A DNA stretch of 64,000 nucleotides. It comes from Polymyxa betae A26-41. Lineage: Eukaryota; Protista; Endomyxa: Phytomyxea. A program made the position numbers and the translations under genes. Each line of letters opens with the position of its first letter. Position 1 is the first letter of the stretch. The stretch covers positions 124,001 to 188,000 of the forward strand of contig RBZT01000633.1 of NCBI GenBank assembly GCA_003693705.1, read 5' to 3'. Of this stretch, positions 34,550 to 45,145 are shown piece by piece. The notes beneath the pieces were generated by a model that was not told the DNA's origin, searched no databases, and saw only the letters and a program-made list of their open reading frames with translations.

Positions 34550-36781
34550 GTTGCCGCATTTATCGCTGCTGCAAAAATGTGAGAAAATTGCAATGCATTT
34601 CTCGGTTTTCAGTACCTAAGGAAATTAAGCAGCAGCGTGCTTTTCTTGACAGCATGTGAACATAGGCAACGTGTTAAATAATATTCAAGTAAGATGCGAC
34701 GCTCCTCAAGGAATTCAGGAGACTGCCCTAGAAATCTATACATATCAGAAATGCCAATATAAGGCTACACGTTGACTTTTCACTTAAGGCGTTTTGAAGG
34801 AAGTGCCGATACCTCGGCAATCGGAAGGTGCGATTTAATCTGTTTATCGAGATCTTCGAACTGGCTAAATCGCTTCAGAACAAGATATGGCCGTCCAGAG
34901 CACGGCTTAACCAGAATCTATGGATAATTCGTCACTACTACAGCAACAGCAACCCAGGTCCAGTTACTTTAAAGAATATCGTCTTGCGAGGCGGCAACAC
35001 CTCATATGCAGGAATCGTGGCCTTAGCAACGGCGAAAGCGCCGGGATTCCGGCAATCGTCGCCGGTGCTGGACATGACGACCCCTTCGACTTACGAATAA
35101 GACGTTAGCAGGGGATAGATAGTGACCAAATAGGAACTGAACGCAGCCTCAGACTCAGTAACAAAGCAATCTAGGGTTTGTAAAGCACGCTGACCATGAA
35201 GTAGCTGGACATAGAGGGGGCCACTGTACACACGGGACCAACATGCTACGGGGGTGCACTGCCCACAGGACCGAGCGAGCCGCTCTGGAAAATGCGTTTC
35301 CTGCACGCCCCATCATCCCATGCAGAACACAATGTGTTTGTTAGGTAAGTATGTACCCAGTCATTCGCATACGTAGTTGCAATCAGACCGTCAAAACGAG
35401 TATGTCAGTACTAATGCCGTCAAGAACGATAGATTCTGCATTCACATTTGCACCAACTTGTGGAGCTTTGTATGGCGGATGCAGAACATGAAAGATTCAT
35501 TATTAACCTCGTGTGACCTGCTTCGATTTGTTTCTCACATGCATTCCTGTGCATCCAAGTTCTTTTGCGATTACTATGTCGAACCACGTTCGAATCAACG
35601 TACATTTCGTTACCAATCAGCAATCACTTCTCAGCCATCATTAAGCACTTTTACAAAAATCTAGCATTTCCTCCCAAAAAAATGAGACTACAGTACTACA
35701 GCGTGCAATCTTTCCATTCTCAGTTTGAAGAACCGCAACAAACCCATGTGAGTTCTTGCTGTAAAAAATTAAATCGTCCTGATTGTATTGTTACGCAACC
35801 GGCGGATGGACGGTGAATGGGTAGATGAAGCAGTTGGGTTTTGCCAGTATCATTCAGTACATACATATTCAAACCGGGATTAACGGAGCGCTTTACAACT
35901 ATAGCGATCGACGTGCGTTGCAATCGGGCAAATGTAGCTGCTTTTTCAATTTTGACTCAGCACCAACTGATCCCAACGTTCTTCACGGCGACGAGCTTCC
36001 CGCAGACCTTTCCGAGGCTCTTGCCGCTGAGCCAGTATGTTCCGCTGCCTGCTATCTACCGAGTAGGTAAACATTGCACACGTAATGACAGAGGCGATAA
36101 GAGCTTCAGATAATACGATGATTATGAAAGGTAATGGTCGAGTTGAATTCTTTGATTGTGAACAGACGGAAGTCTTGGTTTGCATCCCGATTGTGGTTGG
36201 GCCTGGCGCGCTTGCTCTTGGAGAGGATATCCCGCTAACGGCGATCTATTAGGCAGTCGTTAGGGCATGCCACGACATCACGATAAGGACTGCGAACAGC
36301 ACAGCAAAACGAACGGAAACTTTCGATTTTTTATTACTGTTCACTGGTTATCATAAAGAAGAAAACCTTGTCTGCTCTATGATGCAATTCTCACGACCTG
36401 CACGTGATATTGTGACAGCATTATATTGAGGCTGCGGTGGCAGTATGCGACAAGCTTTACATCCAAGAATCAACGCAACGAGAACTCGAAAGTCGAGAAT
36501 CGAAACATGGTGGAGCGGCCGCCTTCCTCCGTTCGCGAATACCGCAAGCTGGGTGCTATTCTTCATTATGATGGATTAACGGTTGATCGATCGGTTCACT
36601 GAAAAGGACAAAGCTCAACAACACCTTGCGGCAGTTTTGGATTCCAGGGAAGTTATCCGAAAATTGCGGTAGAAAAAATAGAAAAAAAAATCGCCGAAAA
36701 TTGCTCGAGTTAGCGAATTGCGCGAACGCAGTCCTTCTCTTGTTTGTTGCGCATAGAGCAGAGAGAAATCCTCGCCCGACG

Positions 36782-37402
36782 ATGGACGGCGTATCTGAGT
36801 CGGTGTCACGGCTGTGGCGAGCCCGAAGGACTGTGGCCCAGATGCTGTCTGACCGTAATTACCTGGTCGCAACCGAGGACACGCACATCACTCTAGATGA
36901 TTTCAAGAAGCGTTTTGGCGAGACGCCCGAACGAAACAAGCTGACCTTGCTCTGCCAGAAACGTGACGATCCGACCGATCAGATCTTCGTCTTCTTTGCC
37001 GATGAGGCCAAAGTCGGCGTCAAGACGATTCGTGGCTACGCCGAGATGATGGAATCGGAAAAGATCTTTCGCGCCATCGTCGTCGTTGAGCAGGGCATCA
37101 CGCCGTTTGCCAAGCAGGTGTTGCAGAATCTGGCGCCCAGGTTGCATATGGAGCAGTTCCATGAGTCCGAGCTCTTGGTGAACATCACCGAACACGTCCT
37201 GGTCCCGAAACACATCCTTCTGCAGCCGGATGAGAAGAAATCCCTGCTGGAGAAGTACACGCTCAAGGAGACGCAGCTACCGCGAATTCAGCTGCAGGAC
37301 CCTATCGCCAGATATTATGGCCTCAATCAAGGCGATGTGGTGAAGATTATCAGACCTAGTGAGACCGCTGGTAGATATATCACATATCGACTATCCATGT
37401 AG
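36782..37402 (+). CDS. RPB5: RNA polymerase I/II/III subunit RPABC1, intronless
   Basis: RLWRARRTVAQMLSDRNY..ELLVNITEHVLVPKH..QLPRIQLQDPIARYYGL..RPSETAGRYITYR. Confidence 0.97.
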   Translation: MDGVSESVSRLWRARRTVAQMLSDRNYLVATEDTHITLDDFKKRFGETPERNKLTLLCQKRDDPTDQIFVFFADEAKVGVKTIRGYAEMMESEKIFRAIVVVEQGITPFAKQVLQNLAPRLHMEQFHESELLVNITEHVLVPKHILLQPDEKKSLLEKYTLKETQLPRIQLQDPIARYYGLNQGDVVKIIRPSETAGRYITYRLSM

Positions 37403-37711: not shown

Positions 37712-38121
37712 ATGTTCCATCAGCGTCTCGTTCTCATATCGCAGCGTCGGTTGCTGTCCACGACAAGTCAGGCAGAATCTAGCACCGACCGTCTCAAACG
37801 CTGCATCAAGCTCTACGGCCCTACAGCCATCGCCTGCCACATCGGCCTGTCTTTGACATCTCTAGCCGGATGGTGACAGAGCACAACTATAGACGAACTT
37901 GATTGCTAAATGATTGTAGGTATGGGGTTGTCTCTTATGGAGTTGATGTCGTCCATATCTTAGAACAATTTGGCGTTCCCGAATCGTCGATCGCTTCCAA
38001 TACAGGGACATTTGCCTTGGCTTATCTCATCCATAAAATGACAGTGCCGGTTCGTGTCCCTTTGACACTGGCTGCCACTCCCTACTTCGCGAAGTATGCA
38101 CCGAAATTCCTGCAGAAATGA
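37712..38121 (+). CDS. FAM210B/DUF1279-like mitochondrial membrane protein, 2 exons
   Basis: Presequence, LKRCIKLYGPTAIACHIGLSL..GVDV..GTFALAYLIHKMTVPVRVPLTLAATP. Confidence 0.85.
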
Positions 38122-38559
38122 TATGACACATAGCGATTCTCTGTCGCATAATGCCCAAAGATTCCTTGCCTATTTGGCCTTTACAACTAACTAAATAACT
38201 CATTGAAATGGCCATTACCTGTGTCGCGCTAAGCGCTCTGATTCCAGCATATATTTGATCAGAAGTACGAAGGCTGACAGGTACCTGATTGTCACTTATG
38301 CGCAACCCGACCTGCTCTACGATCGCTTCTTCAGTGTCGATTTGGACTGTGTAACGGTTAGTTGGGGCGCCCCTGGAACCCCATTGTCTTGGGCTTTGCT
38401 GCTTTGGTCGCGCGTCCTCCTAACCCTGTTACACCCCTTACCCGGTCACAACAGTCTTCGATCGTCGCCGTCGTGGTCTGGATCGAGAAGAATCCTTGGT
38501 CTCGGTGCTCTTGCCCTTGTTCATAGGAGCGCTCATAATATAATTGGCTGCATTTCAGA

Positions 38560-40925
38560 ATGTGGAGTCGTGCGTTTCGTCTGACACATGGGACAAATCG
38601 CGTGAGGCTGGCGGCGCTCGGTGCTGTTGCCGGGACCACTCTGCTTTGGCCAAGATACAATGCCGATGCCTGTGGAATCGTCGCATACGTCGGGAACGAC
38701 AGTGCTTTGACGTATTTGTTAGAGGGATTGACTATTCTACAAAACCGAGGCTACGACTCGTGTGGAGTTGCTACCCTAGCGGACGATGCTGAGCACTCTC
38801 TGGTTACGACCAAATTCGCCTCCAGAGGCTCAACCTCGGACTCTATCGCTATTCTGAAGAAGGAAAGCCCTCCTAAACATAAAGGCCACCACATAGGTGT
38901 TGCACATACACGCTGGGCAACCCATGGTGGCAAGACAGATGAAAACGCTCACCCTCATAGTGATGCCAAGAAGCGAATTGCATTGGTGCATAACGGAACT
39001 ATTGAAAACTCTGACAAACTGAAACAAGAACTCATTGCCAAGGGCATTCAGTTTGATGGACAAACTGACACAGAGGTCATTGCCAAGTTGATCGGAGCCT
39101 ATCTAGACGACGGCCTTCCATTAATGGAAGCAGTCAAGACAACGCTTAGTCGGCTGCAGGGCACTTACGGTTTGGCTATCATCGCGAAAGACCAACCGGA
39201 TCAAATTATCGCTGCCAGAAATGGATCCCCTCTAGTTATTGGCATTGGGAAGGACCAGATGTTTGTCGCCAGTGAGCATACAGGTAAACTCCTGCATCTA
39301 GCTATAGATCGTAAATGTTGACCTGTTTGGTAGCCTTTGTCCGTCATACGAACGAGTACATTTCCTTAAACGATGGGGAAATTGCTGTTATTACTCCCAA
39401 GGATGTCGGCTTGGACAAATCGAGGATGGAACGCTCTGAGAAAGAGGACATTCTTCTTTCGCCTGAACCTTATCCTTACTGGACTATCCGAGGTACAAAC
39501 AATCATCTCGCTTAATTTTCCGTTGATAACTGTTTTAATAGAAATAATGGAACAACCTGAGGCTGTTGCTAGGGCGCTGAACTACGGTGGCAGGTTATGG
39601 TCCAGTGCCCGAGTCAGGCTTGGTGGTCTTGAATCCAATCAAAAAATGCTCATGAACATCCGTCATCTGACCATCTCTGCTTGTGGTACAAGGTTCGTAA
39701 TATTGAATTATCTTTAAAGAAAAGTGTGACCATCTTGCAGTTACTTTGCTGGGCAATATGGGGCCGCTCTAATGCGTCATGTCCATGCTTTTGATACTGT
39801 CCAAACTGTCGATGCTGCTGAACTGAACCTACCCTATCTTCCTCATCCTCATAATGAAGCCGGACTCTTGGTCATCTCTCAATCTGGAGAAACCAAAGAC
39901 GTGCATCGAGCAATAAAACTTGCTGAGGAACAGGATATCCCACGGTTCTCTGTTATCAACGCTGTTGGGTCTTTGATTGCCAGAACAACTCGCTGCGGTT
40001 TGTGAAAGAATCGCCATAGTTTTGTTGTTTTTTGAAAATATTTTCAGGTGTCTATGTTAATGCCGGTCGTGAACATGCTGTTGCATCGACTAAAGCTTTT
40101 ACAACTCAGGTTTGTATTCGAACTCCAGAGCCCACAGCTTATAACCTAGCTGAATTAGGTTACGGTCCTTGCACTGATCGCTGGGTGGTTTGCCCAAAAT
40201 CGTGAAGCTGACCCTAAAAGTCCGCTTGCGCTTCAACGTCGGCAGGAATTAGCCAATGCTTTGCATCGTTTACCCACTTATGTCGGTATGAGTTTACATG
40301 ACAGGGAGAATGTCCAAAAAATCGCTCAAAAAATCAAGGTATCTTGATTGTGGGCTGCCCAAAAATCTGATAATGTTGGCGACAGGATACCGAACACATC
40401 TTTGTTCTTGGCCGGGGCTTCGGAGAGCCTATTGCTCAAGAAGGCGCTTTAAAGATCAAAGAAATCACTTATATTCACGCTGAAGTATGGATGCTCTCTC
40501 TGTGTTGCATAAAGTTCACTTACCAAAATATAGGGCTACTCAGGCGGTGCTTTGAAACATGGCCCGTTTGCCTTGATTGAGCAAGGGACTCCAATTATTA
40601 TGTTAATTCTAGACGACCAGAACGCATCCTTTATGCGAACAGCAGCCGCAGAGGTTTCTTCTATCTTGGGTCTGACCATCTTCGTTGTCACTAAGAATTA
40701 TATCTTTAGGTTCGAGCTCGTGGAGCTCATACTATTGTAATCACTGACAACCCATCGCTTGCTGCTGATATAGCTGACGATACCATATTTATTCCTTCGA
40801 ATGGTCCTTTGACAGCTCTTTTGGGTGTGGTCCCTCTGCAACTGCTCGCATATGAGCTTGCCATTGCTCGTGGAATTGATCCTGATAAGCCCAAGAACTT
40901 GGCCAAGGCTGTCACTGTCGATTAA
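38560..40925 (+). CDS. glmS: Glutamine-fructose-6-phosphate aminotransferase (GlmS/GFAT) with a 37-aa N-terminal leader, 9 exons
   Basis: [64 protein letters not shown]; eight GT-AG introns. Confidence 0.96.
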
Positions 40926-42881: not shown

Positions 42882-45145
42882 ATGGACCTGAGACGTGAGT
42901 CATCGATCATTTGGCAAGGTCAATCAATGCCATCGGAAAACACCAGAACGATGTCGAAGTTTTCTCCAAAAATCCCCATGAAGCTCATAAACCCAGTTTT
43001 CCTGAAACGAATGCGAACTCTCTTCCGCCTGATTGGTCTTGCTGTAGTCTTCGATCGTCTGATGCTTGCATTAGAGAGGACATTCATGACCGCCTCTACT
43101 TTAGATGGCGGTAATGAAGCGCATTACGTTCTAGTATTCAACAATCGTTGCAAGAAATCCGATAAACGGCGTCAGGCGAAACTATCCCAGAAGAAGCGCC
43201 TTCTATCCGAGCTCCATGAAATCGGACTACAAACTGAAGAAATCAACTCTTCGTTTTGGAACGATACCGACTCAGAGGATGTCAGCGTGTATGCAGTTCG
43301 GTCAACATATGATGCTCTAATCCATTATGCAAAGCAAATGGATCTCAAGAAGCGCATCAAATCTACTGGAGCTCTGGTCCCATTCGACGCCTCCATTGGT
43401 CGCAAGTTTGCCGGCTATGCTCCTGGTGATGCCTCCTTGTTCACACAAACTGAACAGCAACGTATCACATTGTTCGCGATGCGCTCGATCCGGTACGACG
43501 ACGGCCGTGATCTGCTGAGCGTTGCCCAGCATAGCGGTGTTCTGAAACAGGTGTTTCCTTTATCCGATCCAGTTCAAGCTCGGGAGATTCTATGGTCGTG
43601 GTCCAAGGCGCCAGGCTCACTTCCTGTCATCAAACAAATCGCTGACTATTTCGGTACAGAGATTGCTTTCAGTTTCGTCTGGTTAGCAGCATATACTCGA
43701 TTCCTCTGGTTGCCGGCTCTGATCGGTGTTATCGTTCATCTGCTCGCTAATGATACGGCTGATGATCTCTGGTCCATGACATTCGCCGCCATTATGCCCA
43801 TCTTCGCCACCATCTTCCTCGAGCAATGGAAACGCCGCTCCAGTCGTCTCCAATACGAGCTGGGCGTGCACGATCTGGAGAGCTTTGAGCGTCCCCGTCC
43901 AGAATACAACCCTCAGGCGATCCGAATTCCGTGGACATCGTTGCAGATGACGCCGCGAGTTCGTAAGGCGATCATAACGGTGGCATCATTCCCCGTCATG
44001 GCCATCTTACTGATGGGTACCGCCGTAGCCATGCTGGTTCAGTTCCAGACACAGGAATTTCTGCAACGTAATCGTCCCGGATCCATGCTGGTCCATGCGC
44101 CATCCGTGCTGTTCAGTATCGTTCTGCCTCTACTCAATGAGGTTTATGTGAGAGTAACGACCTGGATCACCGATCTGGAGAATCACCGAACCCAGACGTC
44201 GTACCGATCCGCATTACTAACCCGACATATCGTATTGACATGTACGAGCTCATTTATGTCACTGTTCTATCTGCTGTTTTGGGTTCAAGACCTGGGGCGG
44301 GTACGTCAGCAACTAGCTGCACTATTGGTCTCATCACAACTTATCGGACAGTTCAAGGTTGGTTGGGTTTTGGATGCTTGATGCGATTCAGGGTTTTAGG
44401 GTTTGTACAGGAGGTTGGTTTGCCTGCTATCAATGGTATCGCCCGAGCTGTTCGCTCGAAGAAGACGTCCGATGAACTGCGACGTGATCGGGATCGGCTA
44501 CGTGCTGGACGTCGTGTTTCAGTCGACAGTCATACTGGACTGCGAAATATTCCCGCTATCGAAGATGAATCTGTCCGGGAACGTTTTCCCAATACTGACG
44601 ACGACTACTCGGAGATGATCATCCAGTTCGGCTATGTACGTGCGGTGTCGTACCAGCCCCCGCCGGGCATCCTCTCTGACATGAATGATTAGGTGTTCTT
44701 ATTTGGGTGGAGCTGGCCCTTAGCTGCCCTCTGTGCATTATTGAATAACCTGACAGAGATCCGGACCGATTGTTTCAAATTATGTATTGTTATGCAGAAA
44801 CCCGAATCACGTTCTGCTAATAATATTGGTGTGTGGTATTATGCATTAGAAGCTATTACTGTAGCAGCAGTGCTTACTAATACTGCTTTTATGTTCCTAC
44901 GTATATGTACTGGACAATCAGATGCATTCTTACCTGGATATGGAATCGGGGCGAAATTGGCTCTTATCATCATATTGGAACATGTGATCCTATTTGCGAA
45001 ATTTGCATTGGATTGGATGATATCAGATATACCAAGCGATATTCGTGATCAAATACATAGACATCAAGTGGACTTTGCAAGAGATCAAACACGACAATTG
45101 ATGGGATCTCGATCTTCAATCATCGAGAAAGCCAAAACTGCATAA
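42882..45145 (+). CDS. Anoctamin/TMEM16 (ANO10-like scramblase); start may be near 43087
   Basis: IADYFGTEIAF, FLEQWKR, TDLENHRTQTSY, DDYSEMIIQFGYV.LF, NNLTEIRTD.FK, IILEHV. Confidence 0.93.

Follow-up and report, generated by a model that had tools for sequence, protein, structure and literature searches.

A glutamine:fructose-6-phosphate amidotransferase of Polymyxa betae with a bipartite mitochondrial-type leader before its catalytic cysteine, and its relatives among protists

[quoted passage not shown] The reaction limits the rate of hexosamine synthesis and is taught as a cytosolic one. In a window of 64,000 nucleotides from Polymyxa betae A26-41, we analyzed a GFAT gene whose product has the same domain order, Cys1, and active-site motifs as GlmS/GFAT but in which a 37-residue targeting leader, rather than a lone initiator Met, stands before Cys1. 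Since Cys1 and its partner residues are invariant and class II enzymes need a free Cys1 amino group, this leader must come off. The locus thus raises the questions of where the leader takes the enzyme and of what removes it.

The gene is intact and expressed, and its 9 exons form a single open frame of 655 amino acids. The features of the locus, with coordinates in the window, are as follows.

36692-37402, + strand: gene for RNA polymerase subunit RPB5, an ordinary neighbor
37712-38121, + strand: FAM210A/B-like gene (PF06916), 120 residues, two exons, intron confirmed in RNA
38170-38218, - strand: antisense GT-AG intron, spliced in one RNA run
38317-38559, + strand: 5' untranslated region of GFAT (minimum extent), unspliced, without ATG; RNA contigs start at 38317, 38342, and 38358
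38560-38607, + strand: N-terminal part of the leader (amino acids 1 to 16), basic, without acidic residues, amphipathic, of the matrix-targeting type
38608-38649, + strand: hydrophobic Ala/Leu/Gly stretch of the leader (amino acids 17 to 30), candidate stop-transfer signal
38650-38670, + strand: polar spacer of the leader (amino acids 31 to 37), ending in Ala-Asp-Ala, a small-residue -3/-1 site
38671-38673, + strand: catalytic Cys38, equivalent to Cys1 of mature class II glutamine amidotransferases, invariant in the alignment
38671-39283, + strand: remainder of exon 1, coding for the glutaminase (Ntn) domain, active-site motifs complete (PF13522, TIGR01135)
39334-40925, + strand: exons 2 to 9, linker and two SIS isomerase domains (RNA joints, open frame, motifs)
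39334-39492, 39542-39692, 39741-39997, and 40048-40109, + strand: exons 2 to 5
40159-40338, 40386-40484, 40534-40653, and 40710-40925, + strand: exons 6 to 9
42882-44381, + strand: anoctamin gene, an ordinary neighbor

The FAM210A/B-like protein, encoded directly upstream of GFAT, has a mitochondrial-type N-terminus. The antisense transcript between the two genes shows no clear reading frame and perhaps diverges from the GFAT promoter.

The eight GFAT introns are of the GT-AG type and 47 to 56 bases long, the first beginning at 39284 after the end of exon 1 at 39283, and every joint was seen in four RNA runs. The frame opens with the ATG at 38560 and reaches the Cys codon as residue 38. In alignments, this Cys corresponds to residue 1 of E. 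coli GlmS (1xff) and to position 1 of TIGR01135. Exon 1 matched PF13522 (E value, 9e-23) and TIGR01135 (2e-67) and scored 152 bits against E. coli GlmS and 95 bits against human GFAT1; profiles, alignment, and a motif check located Cys1 and all glutaminase motifs of the class II domain. The exons cover TIGR01135 up to position 607, and the SIS part carries SQSGET, KEITY, KHGP, and the C-terminal Lys motif in frame. In a structure model, residues 38 to 241 were folded at high confidence; leader residues 1 to 37 remained below pLDDT 50, and the model is thus uninformative on the leader. Judged from its intact motifs, the gene is predicted to encode a catalytically equipped glutamine:fructose-6-phosphate amidotransferase. 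Searches were made with exon 1 or related proteins as queries, and the joined 655-residue protein was used for frame, motif positions, and leader statistics.

An acceptor-like TTTCAG is found at 38553-38558, directly 5' of the ATG, which made it necessary to look for an upstream exon in RNA. In four RNA runs (3 samples, 2 studies), the contigs extend unspliced from 38317-38358 across the ATG to 39284 and leave this site unused; upstream of 38560 they contain no ATG, and an in-frame TAA is present at 38536. The original prediction had noted that neither a Met nor a splice acceptor adjoins the Cys codon, and this was borne out: there is no in-frame Met, the last AG ends at 38654, and the ATGs at 38660 and 38666 are out of frame. 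The contigs of the four runs, which as assemblies lose rare isoforms, likewise revealed neither an ATG directly before the Cys codon nor any alternative start. A true start elsewhere, which would leave the leader untranslated, could appeal to the acceptor-like site and to isoforms concealed by contigs, for example, a minor upstream exon. Given the unspliced RNA across the ATG and the conservation of the leader at the protein level in the paralogue, Spongospora, and SAR at large, it is hardly credible, and a mis-annotated start or upstream exon was rejected.

We then considered the GFAT complement of the genome (27.09 Mb, 1001 contigs; introns of 47 to 56 bases), which was searched with a protein query, TIGR01135, and PF13522. 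It contains two GFAT genes, both of which bear leaders. The paralogue (contig C804) has a 38-residue leader that ends in Ala-Asp-Ala before the Cys, shares 61% identity with the window GFAT over exon 1, and is found as a complete protein (P0240) in assemblies of RNA. Among named proteins, those of Spongospora subterranea come nearest (78% over exon 1); this species has orthologues of both copies, each with a leader. The second, cytosolic GFAT for which the original prediction recommended a search does not appear in the genome, as the three queries returned no leaderless or third copy. The third PF13522 locus encodes Asn synthetase, another class II enzyme, with a plain Met-Cys start. No match to PurF or glutamate synthase was obtained in the genome (PF13522 gave the two GFATs and the Asn synthetase, and PF00310 gave none), a result that may stem from loss of de novo purine synthesis or from the limits of the search. 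The genome also contains several chitin synthase loci. Leaders on UAP1 and AGM1, which had been raised as a possible check, were not seen; by eye, these frames start without one. Two further candidates were rejected, namely, a bypass of GFAT by GNPDA, as the sole PF01182 locus resembles 6-phosphogluconolactonase by eye, and a viral origin of GFAT, as a narrow pattern search found no relative among viral contigs.

The leader of the window GFAT had been described as acid-free, which is correct for amino acids 1 to 16 but not for the whole leader, since Asp36 occupies position -2. Its N-terminal part has a net charge of +4 and a hydrophobic moment of 0.59, compared with +3 and 0.62 in the organism's own cytochrome c1; the best 13-residue hydropathy is 1.88 versus 1.52, and the hydrophobic stretch ends 8 residues before the Cys. 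Three homologue searches yielded 246 scorable N-termini that simple rules assigned to three main classes, the counts of which represent sequences and not independent events, as kin share labels. Class (a), with a hydrophobic leader, comprises 124 of the 246 and includes Rhizaria (Spongospora, Paulinella, Nonionella, and Amorphochlora), stramenopiles (Ectocarpus and chrysophytes), and alveolates (Colponema, as well as Eimeria and Cyclospora). The build of the window leader, a basic N-terminal part followed by a hydrophobic stretch, a spacer, and a -3/-1 site, was found in the paralogue and in about 120 homologues, well beyond chance, and the suspicion that other SAR protists carry such leaders proved correct for all three groups, in which the leader ends at the Cys. 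The homologue searches returned neither the Toxoplasma nor the Plasmodium sequence; to judge from Eimeria and Cyclospora, these GFATs would carry the leader as well.

A number of features characterize the class (a) leaders. (i) Their median length is 72 residues, and the averages for the first 25 positions are 4.2 basic and 0.26 acidic residues. (ii) The hydrophobic stretch is composed of 27% Ala, 18% Leu, and 12% Gly and in 80% of the 124 leaders ends 6 to 16 residues before the Cys. (iii) The motif [AVTS]-x-[ANCS] precedes the Cys in 108 of 123 homologues, compared with a mean of 19.9 and a maximum of 33 after shuffling; among the 124 leaders, P3 is Ala in 80, P1 is Ala, Asn, or Cys in 115, and Asn is found at -1 in 27. 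(iv) No propeptide residue is conserved other than a frequent acidic P2, which is Asp or Glu in 59% of these leaders and in 85% of the amoebozoan PTS2-type leaders described below. The small-residue fit at P3 amounts to 91% in the mitochondrial clade versus 31% in the PTS2 clade. (v) The rules of matrix peptidases do not apply at the Cys site (Arg at -2 in 2 of 123, Arg at -3 in 0, Oct1 pattern in 0), and of 93 long leaders, 46 have an MPP-like R-x-[FLY]-[SA] site farther upstream, compared with 21 after shuffling. This enrichment would be expected if MPP made an initial cut and IMP the next one, as happens with two-step bipartite signals. One homologue (P0120) has a leader but Ser at the Cys1 position.

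Class (b) contains 39 N-termini with a PTS2-like R-[LIV]-x5-[HQ]-[LI] and no hydrophobic stretch, and its named members are all Amoebozoa (Dictyostelium, Balamuthia, Pelomyxa, Luapelamoeba, Ceratiomyxa, and Rhizamoeba). The nonapeptide is located 10 to 35 residues before Cys1, and most of these leaders end in L-x3-[DE]-[TCV] before the Cys (examples are P0148, P0134, P0139, P0169, P0204, P0171, P0179, and P0195). From this signal, the amoebozoan GFATs are probably peroxisomal and matured by the PTS2 protease or by themselves. Class (c) consists of 49 proteins with a Met-Cys start, of which the named ones belong to Patescibacteria in a true bacterial context; at prokaryotic GlmS loci, the ATG directly preceded the Cys in 80 of 80. 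The Patescibacteria GlmS group (P0122, P0192, and P0214; L113:5001-6827) shows 59 to 67% identity to an amoebozoan-type GFAT query and in free trees sits with Amoebozoa inside the protist clade. The three classes form a single clade (SAR, Amoebozoa, and some Patescibacteria) far from ordinary GlmS, with 35 to 42% identity to ordinary bacterial GlmS, and in the unrooted tree, a branch with full support separates class (a) from the rest. The AU test (p 0.41) decides neither the root of the clade nor the direction of the transfer between protists and Patescibacteria.

The reading that we favor, with a probability of roughly 0.6, is one of stop-transfer import followed by cleavage, through which the inner-membrane peptidase (IMP, one of the type I signal peptidases) would free Cys1 in the intermembrane space; activation by IMP in this compartment is what the original prediction had proposed. 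GFAT would be made as a precursor, the basic N-terminal part of which carries it through TOM into TIM23, where the hydrophobic stretch would halt transfer in the inner membrane; a cut by IMP after Ala37 would then both release the protein to the intermembrane space and liberate the alpha-amino group of Cys38. Fructose-6-phosphate and glutamine could enter and glucosamine-6-phosphate leave through VDAC, with the subsequent steps cytosolic. The IMP substrates cytochrome c1, cytochrome b2, Mcr1, and Gut2/GPD2 share with the GFAT leader the basic N-terminal part, stop-transfer stretch, spacer, and -3/-1 site, and the cytochrome c1 of the Polymyxa genome itself has the same build and ends in Ala-Ala-Ala before Glu. 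In such bipartite substrates, the cut releases or trims the protein, whereas in GFAT, it would also create the catalytic group, with Cys at P1'. In yeast Cyt1, which Imp2 cleaves, residue +1 is Met. Asn at -1 is a hallmark of Imp1, the listed sites of which have Asp or Glu at P1', Cys not being among them (PMC8835746); the Cys at +1 of the GFAT site thus does not match the acidic +1 of yeast Imp1 sites, a rule that covers Imp1 sites only. An IMP1-like gene is present in the genome at contig C510:1932-2398 (L017), in which a gene for the second IMP subunit was not detected and may be missed or absent.

Published data on orthologues support the mitochondrial location put forward in the original prediction, as they place Toxoplasma and Plasmodium GFAT at mitochondria and not in the cytosol. 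Correlations that we computed from a Toxoplasma fractionation study on a handful of markers, with a weaker third replicate, were 0.82 with VDAC, 0.84 with DHODH, 0.71 with matrix Hsp70, and 0.59 with matrix Hsp60, compared with -0.7 for the cytosol, -0.41 for the apicoplast, and -0.18 for the ER (PMC7670262). Complex IV BioID captured Toxoplasma GFAT along with cytochrome c and DHODH, the list for matrix SOD2 does not contain it, and its fitness score is -4.57 (PMC12292971). With matrix-targeted APEX and BirA*, it reached log2 values of 2.2 and 2.3, just below the authors' cut-off, and cytochrome c was not enriched by matrix APEX (PMC6156079). In a hyperLOPIT map, in which position does not equal classification, Plasmodium GFAT is found at (-31, -80) and SdhA at (-31, -78), close to MPP and NDH2 and far from apicoplast and ER markers (PMC13369866). 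One N-terminomics supplement contains no GFAT entry, and the main texts on the Andalucia, Babesia, Perkinsus, Plasmodium, and Dictyostelium proteomes do not mention GFAT.

The main rival to cleavage by IMP, which we regard as serious although unlikely, retains the mitochondrial route but has the folded GFAT cut itself, Cys38 attacking the preceding bond as in the Ntn autoprocessing of PurF/GPRAT, so that the hydrophobic stretch merely sorts. Glutamate synthase propeptides end in D-[ANS] before the Cys, and an acidic P2 with a small P1 is common to class (a) and PTS2-type leaders; as the latter are beyond the reach of IMP, the shared acidic P2 hints at a common self-cleavage signal. Moreover, GPRATs shed their propeptide by autocatalysis, also where a plastid transit peptide precedes it (PMC7056826), and self-cleavage is general among Ntn enzymes (PMC9140057). 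However, P3 is kept small in the mitochondrial clade only, for which a signal peptidase accounts and self-cleavage does not, and all 80 prokaryotic GlmS loci begin with Met-Cys. In addition, N-terminally tagged GlmS/GFAT has been reported to be inactive and not self-trimmed. PurF/GPRAT and glutamate synthase precursors resemble GFAT in having an extension that masks Cys1 and that in plants follows a transit peptide, but PurF/GPRAT removes a short propeptide autocatalytically, whereas GFAT has a hydrophobic stretch and a signal-peptidase-type site and, apart from the frequent acidic P2, lacks conserved propeptide residues.

Improbable, in our estimate, is import into the matrix, in which a weak hydrophobic stretch would pass TIM23, maturation would be by self-cleavage or an unknown peptidase, and a hexose phosphate carrier would be needed. 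The labeling of Toxoplasma GFAT by matrix APEX/BirA* (PMC6156079) and matrix glycolysis in stramenopiles speak for it, as do the predictor calls of diatom and oomycete GFATs as mitochondrial, which come without a sub-location. Against it, Toxoplasma GFAT fractionates nearer to membrane than to matrix markers (PMC7670262), matrix import offers no role for a hydrophobic stretch conserved at a fixed distance from the Cys, the Cys site does not obey the rules of matrix peptidases, and the supply of fructose-6-phosphate is unaccounted for. Still less probable is that the rhomboid PARL, which processes comparable bipartite precursors, replaces IMP or that the cut enzyme goes back to the cytosol after mitochondrial transit. 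Such transit has been described for yeast Ptc5 on its way to peroxisomes (PMC7217942), but the GFAT site lies 6 to 16 residues outside the hydrophobic stretch and obeys the -3/-1 rule, and the orthologue anti-correlates with cytosol markers (PMC7670262). Finally, the short plasmodiophorid leader taken alone fits the n/h/c build of a signal peptide for the ER, where the signal peptidase complex follows the same A-x-A rule; GFAT would then be luminal or secretory. Weak ER predictions have been noted for Cyclotella GFATs (PMC5124317). We consider this very improbable, as the median leader has 72 residues with MPP-like sites, the hydrophobic stretch is weak and rich in Ala and Gly, and orthologues do not follow BiP (PMC7670262, PMC13369866).

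Masked Cys1 residues, bipartite signals processed by IMP, and predicted mitochondrial GFATs in diatoms and oomycetes are already known; a masked Cys1 is in itself not new, since PurF and glutamate synthase have one. Mitochondrial GFAT was predicted for Cyclotella in 2016 (PMC5124317) and for Thalassiosira rotula and Phytophthora in 2026 preprints (bioRxiv 10.64898/2026.07.09.737548; 10.64898/2026.07.27.741032), and these proteins very probably belong to the same clade as the window GFAT. As far as the accessible passages show, these papers offer a predictor call alone; they describe neither a bipartite build nor a sub-location, name no protease, and draw no connection to Cys1. One of them, on oomycetes, describes GFAT as cytoplasmic in every non-stramenopile, a statement that is contradicted by the rhizarian, alveolate, and amoebozoan leaders found here. 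Traller et al. pointed out that no fructose-6-phosphate arises in the matrix, a puzzle for a mitochondrial diatom GFAT (PMC5124317); an enzyme in the intermembrane space would reach cytosolic fructose-6-phosphate via VDAC, which would remove this puzzle. In a literature search that lacked most subscription journals, we found no paper on GFAT in the intermembrane space, the coupling of IMP to Cys1, the bipartite build, the occurrence across SAR, or the PTS2 form of Amoebozoa.

For this second eukaryotic GFAT family as a whole, the chances are evenly balanced that SAR GFATs stay inactive until they are cut by IMP in the intermembrane space and that amoebozoan GFATs go to peroxisomes by a cleavable PTS2. 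The SAR scope of this family-wide reading, for which the odds are likewise even, takes in Plasmodium, Toxoplasma, oomycetes, diatoms, and plasmodiophorids, in which the synthesis of UDP-GlcNAc, GPI, and chitin would then need mitochondrial import. If this is true, much of eukaryote diversity would run the GFAT step at the mitochondrion, with an import protease as the activator, and the puzzle of the "mitochondrial" diatom and oomycete GFATs would be answered. The apicomplexan mitochondrion would gain an essential non-respiratory job, and predictions would follow for the fate of GFAT in SAR lineages that are amitochondriate or bear mitosomes. In plasmodiophorids such as P. betae, formation of the chitin wall of resting spores would be tied to mitochondrial import.
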